Source of the DNA: Bugula neritina
Lineage: Eukaryota; Animalia; Bryozoa
Direction of reading: 5' to 3'
Length of the DNA: 64,000 bases
Assembly (NCBI GenBank): GCA_964035545.1
Contig: CAXIUT010000291.1
Location: forward strand, 1 to 64,000
The position numbers and the translations under genes were made by a program. The notes beneath the pieces were generated by a model. That model was not told where the DNA came from. It did no database searches and saw nothing but the letters and a program-made list of their open reading frames with translations. Each line of letters opens with the position of its first letter. Within the stretch, counting starts at the first letter, position 1. Of this stretch, positions 14,846 to 24,496 are shown piece after piece.

Positions 14846-17800
14846 TACTGTTTTTCTTACTGATCGCTTTTTTTTCAGAGACTTTATATGCAGCAGATCT
14901 GCGCTTTTCCCATTTGGGTATAAGTACCTCCGCAAAAGTTTTCGCAATTTCGTGGCCGTATAATGCTCACTTTGCCGTTTGAGCAAAATTAATTTGATAT
15001 TCATCACCTATCGATTCAAGAATTTTGTTCAACCAATATTTGAAGTGGATAGTGTCTCTGAATGCCTGCAAAGGTAGCCATTCGTACTTTATCTTCCGCC
15101 ACAAAATTTCGATTAAATTCAATTCCGGTGAATAGGTCGGAAGGTAACGTGGTATGACACCACGCAAGAGCCAGTCTTCCATTCGTGCCCTGAAGGCAGC
15201 ACTGGTATGCATGGATGCATTATCAATGGCCACAAAACACAGCTTGCCCGTTTTCAAAAACTCCTCTTCGTAGTATTTCTGCGAGAATGCATCGAAAGCT
15301 TCAATCACAGTCTCTGTGGTCACTGAGCCTTCTTTAACCTGATAAAACCACTCACCCTGACGGCCCATAAATCCGAGTACATTCTGACGTTTGCTCTTTT
15401 GAGACGGGATACGACAAGTTTCTCCCACCTTTTGCCATCCATAAGGGACGCTGGGGGTGAGGCTAAAGCCAGCTTCATCAAAGTAGCGCAAGCAAATCTC
15501 ACCCGCGTCTTCCTTCTCTTGTAGATAGATCATCACCTGTTGGTCTTTACGGAAGGTCTCTTCGTCACGTTGCTCCTTGCTGGAAGTCCGTAGTCGTTTC
15601 CAACGGTAAAATTTTTTTCAAACAGCGTTTGTAGGTGTCATCACTGGCAGTCTTATTCGTCTCTGCTTCCAACAGAGCGATAGCGCTCTTGGGCTGATGC
15701 GGATTCTTATCAAGATAATGCCGAAAACGCTCGACTTCATCAGCGGTTAAAGTCGCCGGTCGCCCACTCCTCGGCAGGTCAAACAAGCCAACCACTCCCG
15801 AGGCTTCCCAGGCATCAATCCACTGGCTGATGGTATGGCTACGTACACTAAACACATCCGCTAATTGTGACAGTGTATAACTTTTGTTACTGAGCTGTAT
15901 GGCATGAGCACGTTGACGCGTGCGGGAGGATGGGTGATGCTGCTGTGCTTCACTCAAAGTCAGCTTAACTTCTGCACTGAGACGAGAGACAAATTTCATT
16001 AGTTGGGGTCAGAATGTCGGTAAAATAGTGCCGATCATTATACCACCACTAATCTCTGAAAACTTCTACATCGGTACTTACAGCAGGGCGGTATCGATGC
16101 GCTAGCTCAGGACAAGCATGGCTTTCTCTGGATAGGTACAAGAAATGGATTGGTGCGCTACGATGGTAATGCCATAAAAACCTACCGTAATATTCCTGAT
16201 AAACCTGAAACCCTGCAAGATGATGCCATCATCGCCCTGCACTATGGTAAAGACGGGCGATTATGGGTCGGCACAGCGGAAAATGGAGCGAGTTACTATA
16301 ACTACACAACGGGGCAATTCACCCGAATTGACACCAAGGCGGCTGGTAAGCATGTCTACCGTTTCTACGATGATGAATCGGGGGAGGGTATTTATGCGCA
16401 AACGACAGCTGGTCTGTTTTTTATCGACCTGAGCAATAACGCCAAACTTGTTCTGAGTGCAGAATATTCAGAGTTAGTATTGGGCCTGTATGTCAGTGCA
16501 TCCGGTACGCACGCTATTCTCGAAACAGGGCAAAAGCTCACCTTAGGCCAGAACCCTGAACGACCAGAAATATACCAAATTATCCCGAAAACGCTGATGC
16601 AATACTGGCAGGCTACGTTCTGCCCACACCTGATTAGAGAGGCAATACAGGTAGGCGGTGGTTCTGGCCTGTTCTATTGTTTGCAGGGCAACAAGGTCAT
16701 CGACACCAAATTGAATGAGGTCTTATTTCAGGCCGGTATTAATCCCGGCCAGCTGGTGGTCTATGACCTGACGGAAGATGATAACGGTGTCATCTGGATA
16801 AATAGTGGTCGGGGGTTGCTGCGGATTACGGGCGATCTGGTCTCTAAGATTAAAAGCCCCGGTTTTGATGGCCAGAGCCTGTCCGGCAATAAGCTATCAG
16901 TTCTGCTGGCCGGGCAGAAGAATACCTTGTTTGTTGGCACGCAGGAGCGGGGGCTAAGTACACTCACGCTGGATGACTCGGGTATCAGTTATTTCAACAC
17001 TCTCTATACGGCGTCTCCGGCTGAAAATAAAATTGTCCCTATTGCGCCCGCGAAACCTTGTCAGACTGACGATGACAATGGACAAGCCATGACCTGGAGT
17101 ACGCTGAAAGACGCGGATGGTGATCTATGGGTAGGGAATAACGCAGGTTTGACCCGCAGGCCAGTCGGTTCAGCTACTTTTCAACACTACCACCAGCTGG
17201 GTAGTAAAGCGTTAGTCGATGTATGTGCAGTGCGGGCGTTGGCAGAGGCGGATGGCAAAATCTGGGTCGGTACACCGACAGGGTTGCTCGCCTATGATAA
17301 GCGTAGCCAGGCTGTTACCCACTATACATCTCAGCGGGGTGATGAGGGCGAGCATCATAAAGCGCTTACTGCGATGCGATCAGTGTTCTGTTGCATGATA
17401 ATAAGCGTGGCAGCTTGTGGGTAGGTACTGAGCAGTCTGGGCTGAACCGGATTGATTTGAACAGCGGTAAAATGCGTCATTTTTCTTCTATGGCTAACAA
17501 CCCGGCCATGCTGTCACATGCACAGGTACATAGCCTGTATCTGGATCGGAATAACCGCCTGTGGGTAGGGACGGGGGCAGGTCTGTCGTTATGGAGTGAG
17601 GATAGTGATTCCTTTAAAACCATTCGGGCTTCTGATGAACCCGCAACATTGAGTGGTGCTGTGGTTCATACGATCTACCAGTCCGATGAGGATACCTTAT
17701 GGGCCGGTACGAATAACGGCTTGAATCGGATTAAGATTAGTCAGTTCACTGTGGAAAAACGCTGGTTTGAACGTGATGGGTTACCACATCCGGCAATCTA

Positions 17801-19163
17801 TCAATTTGTCGCTGATGATTATGGTCACTATTGGCTGAGTACGGCTAATGGTTTAAGCCGCTTTGATCCGGCACAGGATAGTTTCAGCAATTATTACCCG
17901 CAGCATGAAACTCAGGCTGATACGGTTAATGTCAATGCCTGGTACCAGGAGAAACAGGGTTTGCTCTACCTGAGTGGGACAGATGGATTTAGTGTTATCA
18001 ATCCGCAAGCATTTGCTACGACTGAGAAATCATATCCTCCGCTTATTACCCGGGTTGATAGCTTAGATCGGCAGGGTGACGAGTCAAAGCTGGAGACGCA
18101 CCCTGCGTTAACTCAGGTGCTGCCCTTAACCGGGGAAGAAGTGCCGACCAAGTTGACGCGTAATGTCCGCCTCAACTTTACCTACCCGTTTTTTGGTGAT
18201 AGCGATTTAGTAAAAAGCCAGTATCGTCTGTTGCCTGCTGTTGATGTTTGGTCAAAGACTTCTCCCGGTTCGCATTATGTGGACTACACCGGCCTGAAAC
18301 CAGGCGCTTATGAATTTCAGCTCAAAGCGAATCTGGCTGGCAATCAGATCAGCAGCTTCCGCTTTGAGATTGAACCTTATTTTTGGGAAACGCCCTGGTT
18401 TCGGGCGCTGGCGTTGATCGCACTGTTAATATCAACCGTATTGTTCACGATTTACTGCTACCGGGTTTGGGGCAAGTTTTCCGCCGACAAAATGACACGT
18501 CAGCATTACCGCATTGTTGAACACGAACTGCGCCCGCATCTGCATGAGGCGAATAAGCAGTTGCAATCGATGCTGCAATCGCCTGGTTTGGCGATTAAAG
18601 ACAAGCAAACCATTCGCTTTTCCATTATGCCGTTAATTGGCAAATCCATTGACTTTATTGCAGAACTACGGACGTTGGTGGATTTACGCCGTACCGTGAA
18701 ACAACCGAAGCAGCTTTATATGCTGGAAGATGTACTGGACGAAGTGCTGCTGTTTTTCCGGGATCAACAGCAGCGTATTGTGTTGGGTGAGGTGGAAGAT
18801 ATTAATGTTCTGACACATCAGGACGCAGTGTATTTACTGGTGAAAAACCTCATCTCTAATGCGATTAAGTATTCGCCGGGCGGTGAGTCGGTACAGGTAA
18901 ATGTGTACTCTGAGGGCAAGACGCTGGTCGTCGAGTGTAATGATCAGGGTATCGGTATTAGTAAAGATAAGCGCAAGGTTATTTATGAGCCGTATAAGCG
19001 CTTTGCCGGGGAGTATAAAAATATTAATGGTCAGGGTATCGGTTTAGCGATTGTACGCTTTGTTGTTCATACTTATCAGGGCAGTATCACTATCACAGAC
19101 AATCAGCCACAGGGGAGTTGTTTCATTGTCCGTCTAAAGGGAGTAGTCGTAGATGAATCATAA
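14836..19163 (+). pseudogene. Beta-propeller/Y_Y_Y periplasmic sensor histidine kinase (HTCS-like), interrupted by IS630 and frameshifted near 17370
   Basis: Removing the IS restores MPKILFFLLIAFFSETLYAADLRFSHLGIQQGGIDALAQDKHGFLWIGT; repeated LWVGT blades, YTGLKPGAYEF, TM, HELR, NAIKYS, DQGIGI, GQGIGL. Confidence 0.85.
14923..16078 (-). mobile_element. IS630-family element, type 1, copy 2
   Basis: Same proteins and same length as 9071-10226, inverted; TA duplication at 14921 and 16079. Confidence 0.95.
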
Positions 19164-19938
19164 AACCAACGGAACTGTCGTATTGATTGAAGACGAGCCA
19201 GCTTCAATTCAGCGTTTGTTGCCCCTGTTGCGTAAGTACCATGAATGCTATTTTGCTACTAATGGCGAGGGCGGGATAAATCTGTATCGTAAGGTCATGG
19301 CTAAGAACCCGCTGGTGATTTGCGATGTGAATCTGCCGGATATGCTGGGGTTTGATGTTTGCCGGGCGATTAAGGCCCACAATCCGGCGACTTATGTCAT
19401 GTTATTGACCGCTTATAATGACAGTGAGCTGAGAATGGCGGGGCTGAACGCTTATGCGGATAGTTATGTCGATAAGGTGCTGAGCGATGAGGAGATTCGG
19501 CTCAAAGTCCGGAATGCCTTTAATACGGTACAGCTCAATCATGCGGTAGAACCGCCGGTTATAACAGAGAAGTCTTCGTGCCGGTGCAAACTGGAAAATT
19601 TTGAAACTTTGGTGCGGGATCGTTTGCTGGATTATTATAAACAGCCGTTTTTTGAGCGTGATAAGCACGGGTGTAATCTGGAAATCATGGCGGAATTTGT
19701 GCATCAGTCTCCACGTACCTTTCAGCGCAAGATGCATGCACAGGTCGGTATGCCATTTAAGACCTTTCAATTAAAAGTTCGCTTGCAAAGAAGCCGGGAA
19801 TTATTGGTGGATGAATTCAGCGTGACCCAGATTGCGGATATTCTGGAATTTTCCAGTCCATCGCACTTTTCACGTGCCTTTCGCGATGAGTATGGGATGA
19901 CGCCGGGTAAGTATAAAAAGCACCAGTTGACGGTGTAA
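19153..19938 (+). CDS. Response regulator, REC + AraC-type HTH
   Basis: IEDE...CDVNLPDMLG...LLTA...K; C-terminal SVTQIADILEFSSPSHFSRAFRDEYGMTPGKY; overlaps kinase stop. Confidence 0.9.
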   Translation: MNHKTNGTVVLIEDEPASIQRLLPLLRKYHECYFATNGEGGINLYRKVMAKNPLVICDVNLPDMLGFDVCRAIKAHNPATYVMLLTAYNDSELRMAGLNAYADSYVDKVLSDEEIRLKVRNAFNTVQLNHAVEPPVITEKSSCRCKLENFETLVRDRLLDYYKQPFFERDKHGCNLEIMAEFVHQSPRTFQRKMHAQVGMPFKTFQLKVRLQRSRELLVDEFSVTQIADILEFSSPSHFSRAFRDEYGMTPGKYKKHQLTV

Positions 19939-20020: not shown

Positions 20021-21883
20021 ATGCTGCAAAAATTCCTAACCTCCCTGGTCAAACCAGCCGACTTCGGCCCAATAGAGCAGCCGCCCCGCAACACGTTGGC
20101 GTTCTTTAAATACTACCTCTACCCCATCCGGTATTTATTACTCATCACGCTCATCGTATCCGGTATCGCCACTGGTACCGAGTTATTGCTGTATGTCTAC
20201 CTCGGCCAGATCGTTGACTGGATGAGCAGCAATGAACCCGCACAATTCTTTGAGCAGTACACGCCTGCACTATTAACCATGCTGGTGGTCGCAATGTTTA
20301 TCCGGCCCATTGCGTTATTAGCAGCACGCGGACTGATAACGTTTGCGCTGACCGTCGGTTGGGGCAATCTCATCCGCTGGCATAATCACCGTTATATGGT
20401 GCGCCAGAGCCTGACCTATTTCCAGAATGATTTTGCCGGGCGTATCGCACAGAAAGTGATGCAGACCGGGAATTCATCGCGTGAAGCGGTGTTGAATGTG
20501 GTCGATGGCTTGTGGTTACTGGTGATTTATCTGGTGGGGATTATCTGGCTGTTTATCGAGATGGATTGGCGCTTGTTGCTGCCGGTTTTGCTGTGGGTTG
20601 TTGGGTATGTTGTGGTGATTGTGACGCGGGTGCCGCCGGTACGCGGGCGTTCGGCAGCGTTATCGGAGGCAAATTCACAGTGGTTGGGTCAGGTGGTCGA
20701 TAGCTATTCTAATATTCAGTCGGTCAAATTGTTCGCCACGCCTGAGTTAGAAGATGCACATACCGGTAAGTATATGCAGGAACACACCAATGCGTTTTAT
20801 GGCCTGATGTGGGCGATTTTCCAGATGACGGCGGCGCTGGTGGTTCTGAACACACTGTTGATTGTGAGTACGGCGGTGGTATCTATTTATCTGTGGCAGG
20901 CGGGTGAGGTGTCGCTTGGCGCGATTACGATCGCCAACGGCATTATTATGCGGGTTAACCAGATGTCCAGCTGGATACTGCGCACGATTACGTCGATGTT
21001 TGAGCATATTGGTACGGTGCAGAACGGGATTGAAACCATTGCGCAGGACAATGCCGTCACTGATAAGCCTGCTGCGCCAGTCTTACAGCTGACACAGGGG
21101 GAGATTGCCTATAAGGATGTTGGTTTCGCTTATAACGCCGGCAATAGCGTGATGCGCGATTTCAATCTGTTGATTAAGCCCGGTGAGAAGATTGGCGTTG
21201 TCGGGCGTTCCGGGGCGGGTAAGTCCACGCTGGTGAATTTATTGCTGCGCTTTCATGATGTGGATGAGGGGGAGATTCTGATTGATGGTCAGAATATTGC
21301 GGCGGTAACGCAGAATAGTCTGCGTGCTGAGATTGCGATGGTGACTCAGGATACGGCGCTCTTGCATCGCTCTGTGCGCGATAATATTCGTTATGGCCGT
21401 CCGCAGGCGAGTGATACTGAGATTGAGCGTGCGGCGCGGCTGGCCGGGGTGGATCAGTTTATTGAGCAGCTGGTTGACCCGAAGGGTAATCAGGGTTTTG
21501 ATGCGCTGGTTGGGGAGCGTGGGGTCAAGCTTTCGGGCGGACAGCGCCAGCGGATTGCGATTGCGCGGGTGATTCTGAAGGATGCGCCGATTCTGATTCT
21601 GGATGAAGCGACGTCGGCGCTGGACTCCGAGGTGGAAGAGGTGATCCAGAGTCGCCTGACTACGTTGATGGAAGGGAAGACGGTGATCGCGATTGCGCAT
21701 CGTTTATCGACGATAGCGGCGATGGATCGGCTGATTGTGGTGGACGAAGGCCAGATTATCGAGCAGGGTTCACATGCGGAGTTGCTGGAGAGACAGGGTT
21801 TGTATGCAAAATTATGGGGGCGGCAATCCGGTGGCTTTCTGGGAGCGGGGCAAAACCCGCATGAGGGGCCTGTTTCCGGATAG
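20021..21883 (+). CDS. ABC transporter fused permease/ATPase (exporter)
   Basis: TM domain; GRSGAGKS, LSGGQRQR, ILDEATSALD. Confidence 0.95.
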   Translation: MLQKFLTSLVKPADFGPIEQPPRNTLAFFKYYLYPIRYLLLITLIVSGIATGTELLLYVYLGQIVDWMSSNEPAQFFEQYTPALLTMLVVAMFIRPIALLAARGLITFALTVGWGNLIRWHNHRYMVRQSLTYFQNDFAGRIAQKVMQTGNSSREAVLNVVDGLWLLVIYLVGIIWLFIEMDWRLLLPVLLWVVGYVVVIVTRVPPVRGRSAALSEANSQWLGQVVDSYSNIQSVKLFATPELEDAHTGKYMQEHTNAFYGLMWAIFQMTAALVVLNTLLIVSTAVVSIYLWQAGEVSLGAITIANGIIMRVNQMSSWILRTITSMFEHIGTVQNGIETIAQDNAVTDKPAAPVLQLTQGEIAYKDVGFAYNAGNSVMRDFNLLIKPGEKIGVVGRSGAGKSTLVNLLLRFHDVDEGEILIDGQNIAAVTQNSLRAEIAMVTQDTALLHRSVRDNIRYGRPQASDTEIERAARLAGVDQFIEQLVDPKGNQGFDALVGERGVKLSGGQRQRIAIARVILKDAPILILDEATSALDSEVEEVIQSRLTTLMEGKTVIAIAHRLSTIAAMDRLIVVDEGQIIEQGSHAELLERQGLYAKLWGRQSGGFLGAGQNPHEGPVSG

Positions 21884-21901: not shown

Positions 21902-22066
21902 GGGTGACAGAATGCTGTCACCCGATTGTCACCTGTCACCTGTGTTGCGTCACTAACTGACAGCTTAACAAGCCTTGTTGTCTTTTCTCTGAAAAGTGCT
22001 TTTTATTTAAATTTTATGTTTATCAGTGGGTTATGGGTTTTTTGCGAAGTTGGCACGCGGGTTGCA
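21902..22066 (+). promoter_or_regulatory. Sigma54 promoter with upstream enhancer-like TGTCAC/GTGACA sites and IHF-like site
   Basis: TGGCACGCGGGTTGCA at 22051-22066 (GG-N10-GC); palindrome GGGTGACAG-N4-CTGTCACCC at 21902-21923; TATCAGTGGGTTA at 22021. Confidence 0.8.
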
Positions 22067-22076
22067 ATAAGGTAAA

Positions 22077-22305
22077 TAACAAAAAAACGATAACAACAAA
22101 ATAAAATAACAACAATAATAAAATAAAGAAATAATAATAAAAACAAAACCATAAGCCCCGAGGCTGAGTAATACAATCCCCTGTTTACGTGTTACGAAGC
22201 CTGTTTCAGTCCTCCCCCTTACCCCGGGGGGAGTACACTGAAAAACATCCCTAATCCCCTTTGTTGTAAGCCCTTAATCAGCCTCGTTTCGCGGGGCTGC
22301 TTTTT
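22077..22305 (+). ncRNA. Putative CrcZ-like A-rich small RNA
   Basis: No ORF; ~75 nt of AANAANAA/ARN repeats, internal hairpin, intrinsic terminator; starts at the predicted +1 of the sigma54 promoter. Confidence 0.6.
22279..22305 (+). terminator. Intrinsic terminator
   Basis: CAGCCTCG-TTTCG-CGGGGCTG followed by CTTTTT. Confidence 0.7.
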
Positions 22306-22415: not shown

Positions 22416-23120
22416 ATGCAAAAATCTAATTTATTGTGCATTGGGCATCGTGGTGCTATGGGGCATGCACCGGAAAACACATTGGCTTCGATCAGTAAGG
22501 CGCTGGAACTGGGTGCGCCGTGGATTGAAGTTGATATTTATGCCGTGGATGGACAGTTGCTGGTCTTCCATGACGATCGTCTGGATAAGAAAACCAATGG
22601 CAAAGGCTATATCCAGGAGCAATCCTTTGAGTACCTACGCTCATTACAGGTGAAAAAGAGTGATCAGCACATTCCGACGCTGGAAGAAGTGTGCGCGCTG
22701 ATCGCAGGCCGGGCCGGTTTGAATGTCGAGTTAAAGGGAGCGGGCACCGCCCAACCAGTGAGTGATTTGCTGGAACGCCTGATTACCGAAGGCTGGTCGC
22801 GTGAGCAGTTTCTGGTGTCTTCGTTTAATCACCGTGAACTACTGGCGTTTCGGGAAACTAATCCCGCGATTCGTGTTGGCCTGCTGCATTGTAGTTTACC
22901 CGTGGATGATGCCAAATCTGCTGAGGAGTTGGGAGCGTATTCGGTGAACCCCTCGCTGGAATTCATTGACCAGCGCTATGTGGATGATGCACACCGGCGT
23001 GGTCTCAAGGTTTATGTGTATACCGTGAACCATCCCGAAGATATTGCGCGTATGCGTGACCTTGGGGTTGATGGCGTGTTTACCAATTATCCGGAACGGG
23101 TGTTACAGGCGGCGGCCTGA
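22416..23120 (+). CDS. Glycerophosphodiester phosphodiesterase
   Basis: GHRGA..APENTL, EVD, HD, NVELK, GVDGVFTNYP. Confidence 0.92.
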   Translation: MQKSNLLCIGHRGAMGHAPENTLASISKALELGAPWIEVDIYAVDGQLLVFHDDRLDKKTNGKGYIQEQSFEYLRSLQVKKSDQHIPTLEEVCALIAGRAGLNVELKGAGTAQPVSDLLERLITEGWSREQFLVSSFNHRELLAFRETNPAIRVGLLHCSLPVDDAKSAEELGAYSVNPSLEFIDQRYVDDAHRRGLKVYVYTVNHPEDIARMRDLGVDGVFTNYPERVLQAAA

Positions 23121-23168: not shown

Positions 23169-24496
23169 GTACCTCGCCTTGGAGATATGATTGATAATCA
23201 TGCCACCAGCGGCTTCCCGATGTAAGTCCATTGAAAAGGCTTAGCCAAGTATTTGTTGAAATAATCGATAAAGGCTTCCACTCTTTGCTTAAGATTTTCC
23301 TGTGAGGTAAAGCTGCCTCGCCTGAGTAAGCGTCGACTGAGAATGCCAAACCAAATTTCCACTTGATTGAGCCAGGAGCAATGCTTCGGCGTGAATACGA
23401 ATCGAATGCGATGCGCTTCATCTTGCAGGAAGGCCATTCTTGATGCCATACTTTTCAGAATACCTGATTTCCCCTTTTCCCCCAGCGGCTGGTTTAACTG
23501 ACAGGCTTGCGCGACGTACTCGACCAATCCGGCTGACTTGTGTGTATTGAGCTGATCCACTACAAATATCCACTGATCCTTAGCCGCAGTACCAACCGTA
23601 CGCTTAATGTGGGCGACAAAATCAGTTTCAGTTCGGGTATCACCAACGGTTGAGTCGATCACTTGCCCGGTCGCAATTTCGAAATTAGCGATCAGGCATT
23701 GAGTGCCATGCCGGGTATATTCAAACTCGTGCCGTTCCGGTTGCCCGGACTCCATCAGGTGGTCAGGATGGATACGTTCAATCGCTTGCATACCCGTTTT
23801 CTCATCCGTACTCACCAGGTGTATTCCTTGTTCATGGAGGGCTTCAGCCTGATGGTACAGTTTACAGATAGCATGAACAGCCTGGCGAAATTCGGGGCTA
23901 TCTTCAACACCCTGATTAAGCCAGTACTGAATACGGTGGGGCTTTAAATCAGCCTGATTTTAAAAAACGCTCGATACTGCTTTTCGAGATGCTATTAACA
24001 ATGCCGCGTTCTACCGCCATCCGGGCCAATTCGGCCTGTGTCCAGTGGCTTAGGTGAGTCGGCGGTTTCTCGCAAGCCAGGGCGATAATCCGACAAACCT
24101 GCTCAGCAGTAAAAGTGGGTGGGCTGCCACTGCGGGGAAGGTCACTGAGTAGGTGACGAATACCCTGACCCAGCAACCGGGGTTTATCTTCCCAACGCGA
24201 CAGTTTTGAATGGCCTTCAACCCAGCGACGACGCCACAGCCCCACAGCATTTTCATTCAAGCTAACTTGTTGGCTGATCGCTTTATTGCTGTTTCCCAAA
24301 GCCGCCAACAAAACGACCTGACTACGTTGGAATAAACTGTAAGCCGTTTTTCCACTCTTCACAAAACTTTCCAGCAGTGCTTGCTGGCCAGAACTCAGTT
24401 CAACTACAGAAACAGGACGGGACATCGAATTAGCTACCATAACTCTCAGATGATAGAGAGATGGGGGTTATCCATGATAGTTTCAAGGTGAGGTAC
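23169..24496 (-). mobile_element. IS630-family element, type 2, copy 2
   Basis: Same proteins and same 1328-bp length as 11982-13309; inserted at CTAG. Confidence 0.95.

Follow-up and report, generated by a model that had tools for sequence, protein, structure and literature searches.

Here, we describe a predicted small RNA (sRNA) gene at positions 22077 to 22305 of a 64,000-nucleotide stretch of DNA, hereafter called the window, which forms the beginning of contig CAXIUT010000291.1 in the Bugula neritina assembly GCA_964035545.1. Judged by comparative sequence analysis, it is a real sRNA gene that belongs to a previously undescribed, multi-copy family. By the same evidence, this family is order-wide and specific to Thiotrichales, with several copies per genome in about 90 of 107 species genomes. 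The explanation that we favour, tentatively, is that the gene encodes a trans-acting RNA of about 229 nucleotides (nt), which is activated by PilR and occupies or titrates Hfq, and in which C-rich motifs form a second functional surface. The analysis was carried out in silico. The anatomy of the locus, its conservation, structure and distribution, and the sharing of its enhancer with pilin genes were observed; transcription, the binding of PilR and of Hfq, and effects on targets are inferred from them.

The first-pass annotation, which was made from the DNA letters of the window, had placed here an unannotated, self-contained sigma54-dependent unit for a non-coding RNA outside Pseudomonas. It had pointed to clustered TGTCAC/GTGACA half-sites, an IHF-like site at 22021 and a consensus sigma54 promoter. 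All of these elements are present, together with a further palindrome, and the control region of the predicted unit can be described as follows.

21903..21922: distal enhancer palindrome GGTGACA-N6-TGTCACC, read in the sequence
21904-21909, 21916-21921, 21927-21932 and 21934-21939: enhancer half-sites, GTGACA in the first and TGTCAC in the other three
21927..21939: two direct TGTCAC repeats, further half-sites, matching a family-wide TGTCA peak at -130 from the promoter
21949..21962: proximal enhancer GTCA-N5-TGACA (GTCACTAACTGACA), a predicted PilR site whose TGACA lies 93 nt upstream of TGGCAC
22021..22033, plus strand: IHF consensus WATCAR-N4-TTR (TATCAGTGGGTTA), inside an AT-rich stretch
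22051..22066, plus strand: sigma54 promoter TGGCACGCGGGTTGCA (TGGCAC-N5-TTGCA), with GG at 22052-53 and GC at 22064-65 in GG-N10-GC spacing

The sigma54 promoter is invariant throughout the sRNA family, and within the 64-kb window it is the only one of its kind with upstream enhancer sites. Upstream of 33 non-redundant family members, hexamers containing TGTCA or TGACA are enriched 8-11x, and nearly every member has the palindrome GTCA-N5-TGACA about 90-100 nt upstream of TGGCAC. In 22 of the 33 members, an IHF consensus lies at a constant -29 to -31 from TGGCAC; among shuffled sequences, the proportion is 0.6%. The locus has the general attributes of an sRNA gene that depends on sigma54 and an enhancer-binding protein, namely a GG-N10-GC promoter, upstream sites, a terminator-ended non-coding product and rpoN in the lineage, and it is predicted to be transcribed.

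Downstream of the promoter, about 75 nt of nearly pure triplets had been noted in the first-pass annotation, followed by a hairpin and an intrinsic terminator. The hairpin and the terminator are confirmed. The tract is A-rich as described (73% A over 22073-22150, against a window mean of 23%), and it is the most A-rich 78-nt segment of the 64 kb on both strands, but it is composed of several phased A-R-N blocks and not of a single register. It contains 11 of the 28 plus-strand AANAANAA starts in the window and the two longest A-R-N runs of the plus strand. The predicted RNA, all of whose parts are on the plus strand, is composed of the following elements.

22077..22305, plus strand: predicted sRNA of about 229 nt; +1 inferred from promoter geometry
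22073..22150, plus strand: A-rich (A-R-N) tract, predicted unpaired, with one run of 6 triplets starting at 22105 and one of 7 starting at 22127
22152..22159, plus strand: unpaired UAAGCCCC, a near-invariant family motif (CAGCAAGCCCC in most members), from alignments and predicted fold
22161..22202, plus strand: stem-loop P1 (AGGCU/AGCCU, GUAAUAC/GUGUUAC) with the C-rich apical loop AAUCCCCUGUUUAC, from the predicted fold
22205..22241, plus strand: C-rich hairpin (UUCAGU..CCUCCCCC-loop UUACCCC-GGGGGGAG..ACUGAA), helices 2 and 3
22256..22273, plus strand: CCCCUUUGUUGUAAGCCC, directly before the terminator; invariant in the window and in loci L002, L003 and L090
22279..22305, plus strand: intrinsic terminator, with a stem at 22279-22299 (9 bp, 6 G-C pairs) followed by CUUUUU

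The predicted 229-nt RNA has a minimum free energy (MFE) of -57.3 kcal/mol, with z = -5.3 against dinucleotide shuffles, and its A-tract is largely unpaired. The outer helix of P1 has compensatory changes, and the inner helix covaries by eye among the window, L002, L003 and L090. In the C-rich hairpin, changes on both sides are seen in 9 of the 11 pairs of helices 2 and 3. The terminator differs from that of L002 by two compensatory changes, U-G to C-G and C-G to U-A. According to the predicted fold and the covariation, CCCC-type C-runs are exposed in the apical loops. A long-range pairing of CCCCUUUGUUGUAAGCCC with AACAACAA in the 5' tract may also form and is seen in the MFE fold only. This fold pairs ACAACAAA (22093-22100, in the A-tract) with UUUGUUGU (22259-22266); the window-type subfamily conserves both of them and shows no covariation at this pairing. 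The first-pass annotation had considered a CsrB/RsmZ type unlikely, and this view stands: GGA, which such RNAs carry many times in loops, occurs once in the 229-nt RNA. A coding RNA was also considered and rejected, since no start codon is accompanied by a ribosome-binding site. Coding is also ruled out by the indels of 16-17, 5 and 1 nt in the A-rich part, which are not multiples of three.

The gene lies in a gap between an ABC-transporter gene (20021-21883) on its 5' side and a glycerophosphodiester phosphodiesterase gene (22416-23120) on its 3' side. The relatives used for comparison were reached via matches to the ABC-transporter gene, which shares 91% identity with its counterpart in a Thiolinea metagenome-assembled genome (MAG), 83% with that of an uncultured Thiotrichaceae MAG and 67% with that of Leucothrix arctica. 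The surrounding assembly totals 216 Mb over 321 contigs; the DNA of the window is bacterial. These identities assign the contig to what is probably a Thiotrichaceae associate or contaminant in a larger genome, a bacterium only partly assembled.

In the two closest relatives, L002 and L003, orthologues of the sRNA gene are located between the same two genes, and promoter, IHF site, enhancer, A-rich blocks, C-rich motifs, hairpins and terminator are kept. Conservation of promoter, A-rich tract and terminator in relatives, proposed in the first-pass annotation as a check, was thus found, and it extends to the wider family. The same elements recur in dozens of further paralogues and orthologues and therefore are not due to chance. 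An initial DNA search was followed by R1, a sequence model built on the promoter and the 5' region. Searches at family level and at order level covered an identical set of 107 genomes. R1 matches 61 of these 107 Thiotrichales species genomes, typically with 2-4 copies each, some of them in tandem, and none of 149 other sampled Gammaproteobacteria, which double as a specificity control. R1 under-detects a divergent clade that was later revealed by the enhancer pattern described below. Eight family members were compared with Rfam, and none matches any Rfam family. Tandem pairs of family members with their own promoters, 1-2.5 kb apart, can be seen at G003:C29:82030-84530, G105:C1:1460561-1461722 and G086:C1:3497659-3499496.

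Members of the family range from about 140 nt, with one module, to 400-560 nt, with 2-4 modules behind a single promoter; the form of about 140 nt is the commonest. All forms have an A-rich leader or loop, a near-invariant unpaired AGCAAGCCCC, a stem with an A-rich or C-rich apical loop, further exposed C-runs and a terminator. An A-rich loop segment of the AAUAAUAAAAAUAA type is conserved across the order, which points to selection on its sequence, beyond composition. Among window-type modules, pairing is kept in 93.9% of helix cells and 12 of 15 pairs have double changes, with 0 of 500 shuffles as good and slid controls at most 59%, in an alignment that was fitted to the structure model. Structural support comes from these modules, since, for the 140-nt forms, MAFFT with RNAalifold aligned two subtypes wrongly and retrieved the terminator only. 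A structured model, R2, matched its own subfamily and gave two further, weak matches. In the long forms L184, L106, L185 and L186, weak U-runs (GGGGGAAUUUUA) come after the internal C-rich hairpins, which may be leaky terminators that produce nested short and long isoforms. One divergent member, L183 (G051:C1:4136174-4136276, minus strand), has the same enhancer and promoter, is without AGCAAGCCCC and lies about 5 kb from hfq.

The order of the sRNA and the phosphodiesterase gene is kept in L002, L003 and L090, as would be expected if the element were a cis-acting leader or attenuator of that gene, or a transcript running into it. This is the least probable of the readings that we weighed. A strong terminator stands 110 nt before the ATG, and the order is kept only in close relatives. 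Most family members adjoin unrelated genes, such as a tRNA gene, an opposite-strand membrane-protein gene or other sRNA copies, and each has its own terminator. Because the contexts vary in this way, the element is not a phosphodiesterase leader but an independent gene.

The first-pass annotation had described the RNA as CrcZ-like. In its design, the RNA resembles CrcZ, CrcY and CrcX of Pseudomonas: each has a sigma54 promoter, an activator region made of hexamer half-sites, an IHF site and an A-rich RNA start of the ACAACAA type, and there are several paralogues per genome, some of them in tandem. The AANAANAA load is also as high as that of genuine CrcZ, with 10 motifs in the 229 nt of the window RNA and 15-21 in the long family forms, compared with 12-13 in the 380 nt of CrcZ. 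Like a CrcZ-type RNA, the window RNA thus has multiple AANAANAA motifs that are predicted to be unpaired, together with the A-R-N runs of 6 and 7 triplets. The likeness does not extend to homology. The Rfam CrcZ model (RF01675) scores 23.1 bits against a gathering threshold of 95 and aligns over the A-rich tract only, while the same model gives genuine CrcZ copies 277-305 bits. For comparison, R1 gives 9-16 bits on Pseudomonas crcZ/crcY promoters and 5' ends and 40-60 bits on family members. At the sequence level, the RNA resembles CrcZ in design and is not a CrcZ homologue. It differs in that its enhancer is common to pilA, its gene is away from any activator gene, and conserved exposed C-rich motifs are its defining feature. 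In Pseudomonas genome G109, two tandem CrcZ-like copies were observed.

A CbrB-like activator and a catabolite-repression-like circuit had also been proposed, and this part of the first-pass annotation is not supported. The subsites of CbrB are TGTTAC/GTAACA, and CbrAB is described as exclusive to pseudomonads (PMC6296734). The window has sigma54 and IHF elements, but its subsites are TGTCA/TGACA, arranged as GTCA-N5-TGACA. A search of the genomes for rpoN, hfq, crc and cbrAB, which had been suggested, returned rpoN and one or two hfq genes in all five relatives tested; crc and a clear cbrAB were not found. With Pseudomonas CbrA and CbrB as queries, the five relatives gave generic NtrC-family matches and no clear cbrAB-like pair. 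Some relatives have sodium-solute-symporter-fused kinases, which are paired with small non-sigma54 regulators. No activator gene adjoins the sRNA gene, whose neighbours are those named above, whereas crcZ is located downstream of cbrB. NCBIfam has no specific model for either Crc or PilR; Crc was assessed via solved structures and PilR by context and orthology. No Crc orthologue was found in the five relatives: the best Crc-like candidate shares 41-45% identity with Crc and scores higher against a Neisseria exonuclease (305 bits) than against Crc itself (228 bits). That the element is a CrcZ-type RNA, driven by a CbrB-like activator and relieving carbon catabolite repression by Hfq and Crc, is thus very improbable. 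The combination of promoter, IHF site and hexamer half-sites one base off the CbrB subsites (PMC6296734), the comparable AANAANAA load and the weak R1 matches to crcZ/crcY speak for it. It is opposed by the confinement of the Rfam alignment to the A-tract, with no family member reaching any Rfam threshold, by an enhancer that is common to pilin genes and not to catabolic genes, by the kinase partners and the lack of an adjoining activator gene, and by the affinity of the Crc-like protein and the restriction of CbrAB (PMC6296734). The CrcZ reading is largely refuted, both for homology and for the activator.

The enhancer leads to a different regulator. The pattern GTCA-N5-TGACA, 70-100 nt upstream of a sigma54 promoter, was searched with the reversed pattern as a control. 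Five complete genomes yielded 13 matches, and the control none; these were 10 sRNA genes and 3 type IV pilin genes. Over the 107 genomes, the pattern occurs in 91, with about 200 matches against 1 for the control. A further 29 matches were inspected, all from the clade missed by R1, and consisted of 22 divergent sRNA members and 7 pilin genes. All 42 inspected matches therefore belong to the sRNA family (32) or to type IV pilin genes (10) and to nothing else, which suggests a single compact sigma54 regulon made up of the sRNA family and pilA. The sRNA and pilA promoters of the same genomes share both site and spacing, as members of a PilS-PilR regulon would. The pilA promoter has the same GTCA-N5-TGACA at the same distance from its sigma54 promoter; it differs in that its product is a pilin, compared with a non-coding RNA here. 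G062 shows a pilS-pilR-pilA arrangement: genes for a histidine kinase and a sigma54 activator immediately precede the pilin gene. The G062 activator has full-length orthologues in G001, G002 and G051, with 63-71% identity; no other activator exceeds 43%. G002 is closely related to the bacterium in the window, and there, too, pilA directly follows the kinase-activator pair; its promoter, downstream of the orthologous activator, also carries TGTCAtgtttTGACA. The sites of FleQ, NtrC, NifA, GlrR and NorR were considered as matches to GTCA-N5-TGACA, but their known spacings do not fit. PilR is an established activator of pilA in many Proteobacteria (PMC6058289). Since the enhancer arrangement is common to the sRNA and pilA, PilR is probably the activator of the sRNA family, and it is the parsimonious choice.

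Hfq is the likely partner of the RNA, as far as can be read from the sequences. In the Hfq of G002, the segment SIYLVNGIK keeps Y25, G29, I30 and K31. Work on E. coli Hfq has shown that residues of this type form the distal face, which binds A-R-N. A distal-face ligand is expected to have at least 4-6 consecutive unpaired A-R-N triplets and to meet an intact distal face, and both are found by prediction; each of the two runs is long enough for the six pockets of one Hfq hexamer. Hfq binding is plausible because the A-rich load is at least that of CrcZ and the Hfq of relatives keeps its distal-face residues. A second, divergent Hfq paralogue, with F for Y25, no rim arginines and an insertion, is found at L118:1501-1692 (minus strand; G001), G002:C23:49950-50141 and G071:C1:151960-152121.

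The first-pass annotation left another conserved feature unweighed: the C-rich motifs of the RNA are invariant and unpaired, which argues for base pairing or for another partner. We consider it quite possible, though less probable than the explanation that we favour, that the RNA is a conventional base-pairing sRNA, either Hfq-dependent and using both faces of Hfq or Hfq-independent like sX13. The C-rich motifs (AAGCCCC, the loop CCCC and CCCCUUUG) would then be seeds that pair with G-rich sequences close to translation starts. The A-R-N tract would do no more than tether the RNA to the distal face of Hfq, and its expansion in the window copy would be lineage-specific drift. AGCAAGCCCC is the most conserved element of the family and is unpaired, three C-runs are exposed per module, and the RNA ends in a terminator with a U-tail; sibling copies in each genome are typical of pairing sRNAs. 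There is also a precedent in Xanthomonas, where the C-rich loops of sX13 act on G-rich start regions, including those of pilH and hfq (PMC3771888). However, the A-R-N load matches that of CrcZ, the A-rich loop sequence is conserved order-wide, and a transcript that repeats whole modules is more what would be expected of an RNA that titrates a protein.

The display of three exposed GCCCC-type motifs per module, with modules repeated 2-4x in some transcripts, resembles the GGA loops of CsrB/RsmZ. It would also suit an RNA that sequesters an unknown protein recognising the module (AAGCCCC and the C-rich loops), with Hfq irrelevant and the A-rich segments serving as spacers or as sites for ribosomal protein S1. 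This is improbable, since the A-R-N segments are conserved in sequence and have a size that fits Hfq. To our knowledge, there is no established regulator in Gammaproteobacteria that is specific for C-rich loops. Occupation or titration of Hfq is favoured because of the A-R-N load, the conserved A-rich loop and the repeated modules per transcript. Titration and seed pairing through the C-rich motifs may both hold.

Several observations weigh against a PilR-activated RNA that titrates Hfq. The PilR site of P. aeruginosa is reported as TGT-N11-ACA (PMC8035640, PMC6058289), while the Thiotrichales site is TGT-N9-ACA. Because the spacing differs, the assignment of PilR rests on enhancer architecture and gene neighbourhood within the lineage. 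The most conserved element of the RNA is the unpaired C-rich motif and not the A-rich tract, part of which may pair with UUUGUUGU in the 3' half in the MFE fold. The form of about 140 nt has only one or two A-R-N blocks of a size that suits Hfq, and it fits an ordinary Hfq-dependent pairing sRNA equally well. Finally, rpoN, hfq, pilR and pilA were not found in the window's own assembly (G000), in which the bacterium is partial; for this reason all evidence on partner genes is drawn from relatives. Searches of that assembly for sigma54 activators likewise gave nothing relevant. Among sequencing runs, a search for the stretch turned up one run of unrecorded type, stored as contigs, and none recorded as RNA.

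In the mechanism that we propose for the PilR-activated RNA, sigma54 RNA polymerase would start at about 22077, activated from GTCA-N5-TGACA with IHF-assisted looping. The long unpaired A-R-N tract would fit the distal face of Hfq and could accommodate more than one hexamer. Active PilR would thus lead to occupation or titration of Hfq by the RNA, in the manner of CrcZ in Pseudomonas. A second surface would be provided by the C-rich motifs, which are invariant and unpaired, as a seed for G-rich mRNA sites or as a contact for another partner. A more specific scheme can be drawn for pilin itself. The pilA leaders (L179:1614-1684, L180, L190 and L142) have A-R-N motifs directly against the ribosome-binding site (AAUAAUAAGGA, AAUAACAAGGAG) and in this respect resemble the Hfq-repressed leaders of Pseudomonas. 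Given this position of the motifs, the RNA would, speculatively, relieve repression of pilin by Hfq. PilS-PilR would then drive both pilin and an Hfq-titrating RNA that lifts Hfq repression of pilin translation, in a coherent feed-forward loop, a scheme that we regard as unlikely.

The control design has counterparts in other bacteria. In Qrr1-5 (LuxO), GlmY/GlmZ (GlrR) and NrsZ (NtrC), sigma54 and a response regulator drive small, terminator-ended RNAs that are often multi-copy. The design is similar here; the sequences are unrelated, as there is no Rfam match, and the predicted activator is PilR. In architecture, the RNA is similar to sX13, RsaE/RoxS and RepG, in which an unstructured 5' region is followed by stem-loops with CCCC in their loops. 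It differs from sX13, which is Hfq-independent and lacks both an A-R-N tract and a sigma54 promoter, and the sX13 family was not matched. RsaE/RoxS (RF01820) scored 23.5 bits against a threshold of 79 (E = 0.3), with only AUCCCCUUUGU in common; the CCCCUUUGUUGUAAGCCC region is the source of this weak match. No PilR-dependent sRNA and no work on sRNAs of Thiothrix was found in the searchable literature, the coverage of which is incomplete, so that absence is not proven.

Two other features were observed in the neighbourhood of the gene. Upstream of the ABC transporter, at 17391-19938 on the plus strand, the gene for a histidine kinase that carries a two-component-regulator propeller domain precedes one for an AraC-type response regulator; this pair has no evident connection to the sRNA. 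Just past the phosphodiesterase gene, at 23198-24440 on the minus strand, there are a DDE_3 transposase open reading frame (ORF; 23198-23815) and a separate helix-turn-helix ORF (23949-24440), which together resemble an IS630-type transposase split by frameshift or decay.

Whatever its mechanism, the family represents a well-defined, order-wide sRNA that is in no RNA database. The predicted compact PilR regulon, consisting of pilin and these RNAs, would be a post-transcriptional output of PilSR that has not been described before. Titration of Hfq by an A-rich, sigma54-dependent RNA has so far been a speciality of Pseudomonas, where it is tied to the choice of carbon source. If our explanation is true, the sponge principle would have evolved more than once and could serve decisions on surface and motility. 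Under the less likely feed-forward scheme, the RNA would be the first sRNA arm of a PilSR regulon and an independent invention of the Hfq sponge, and the state of the pilus would be coupled to global post-transcriptional control, for example in a switch between dispersing and attaching in these filamentous bacteria.

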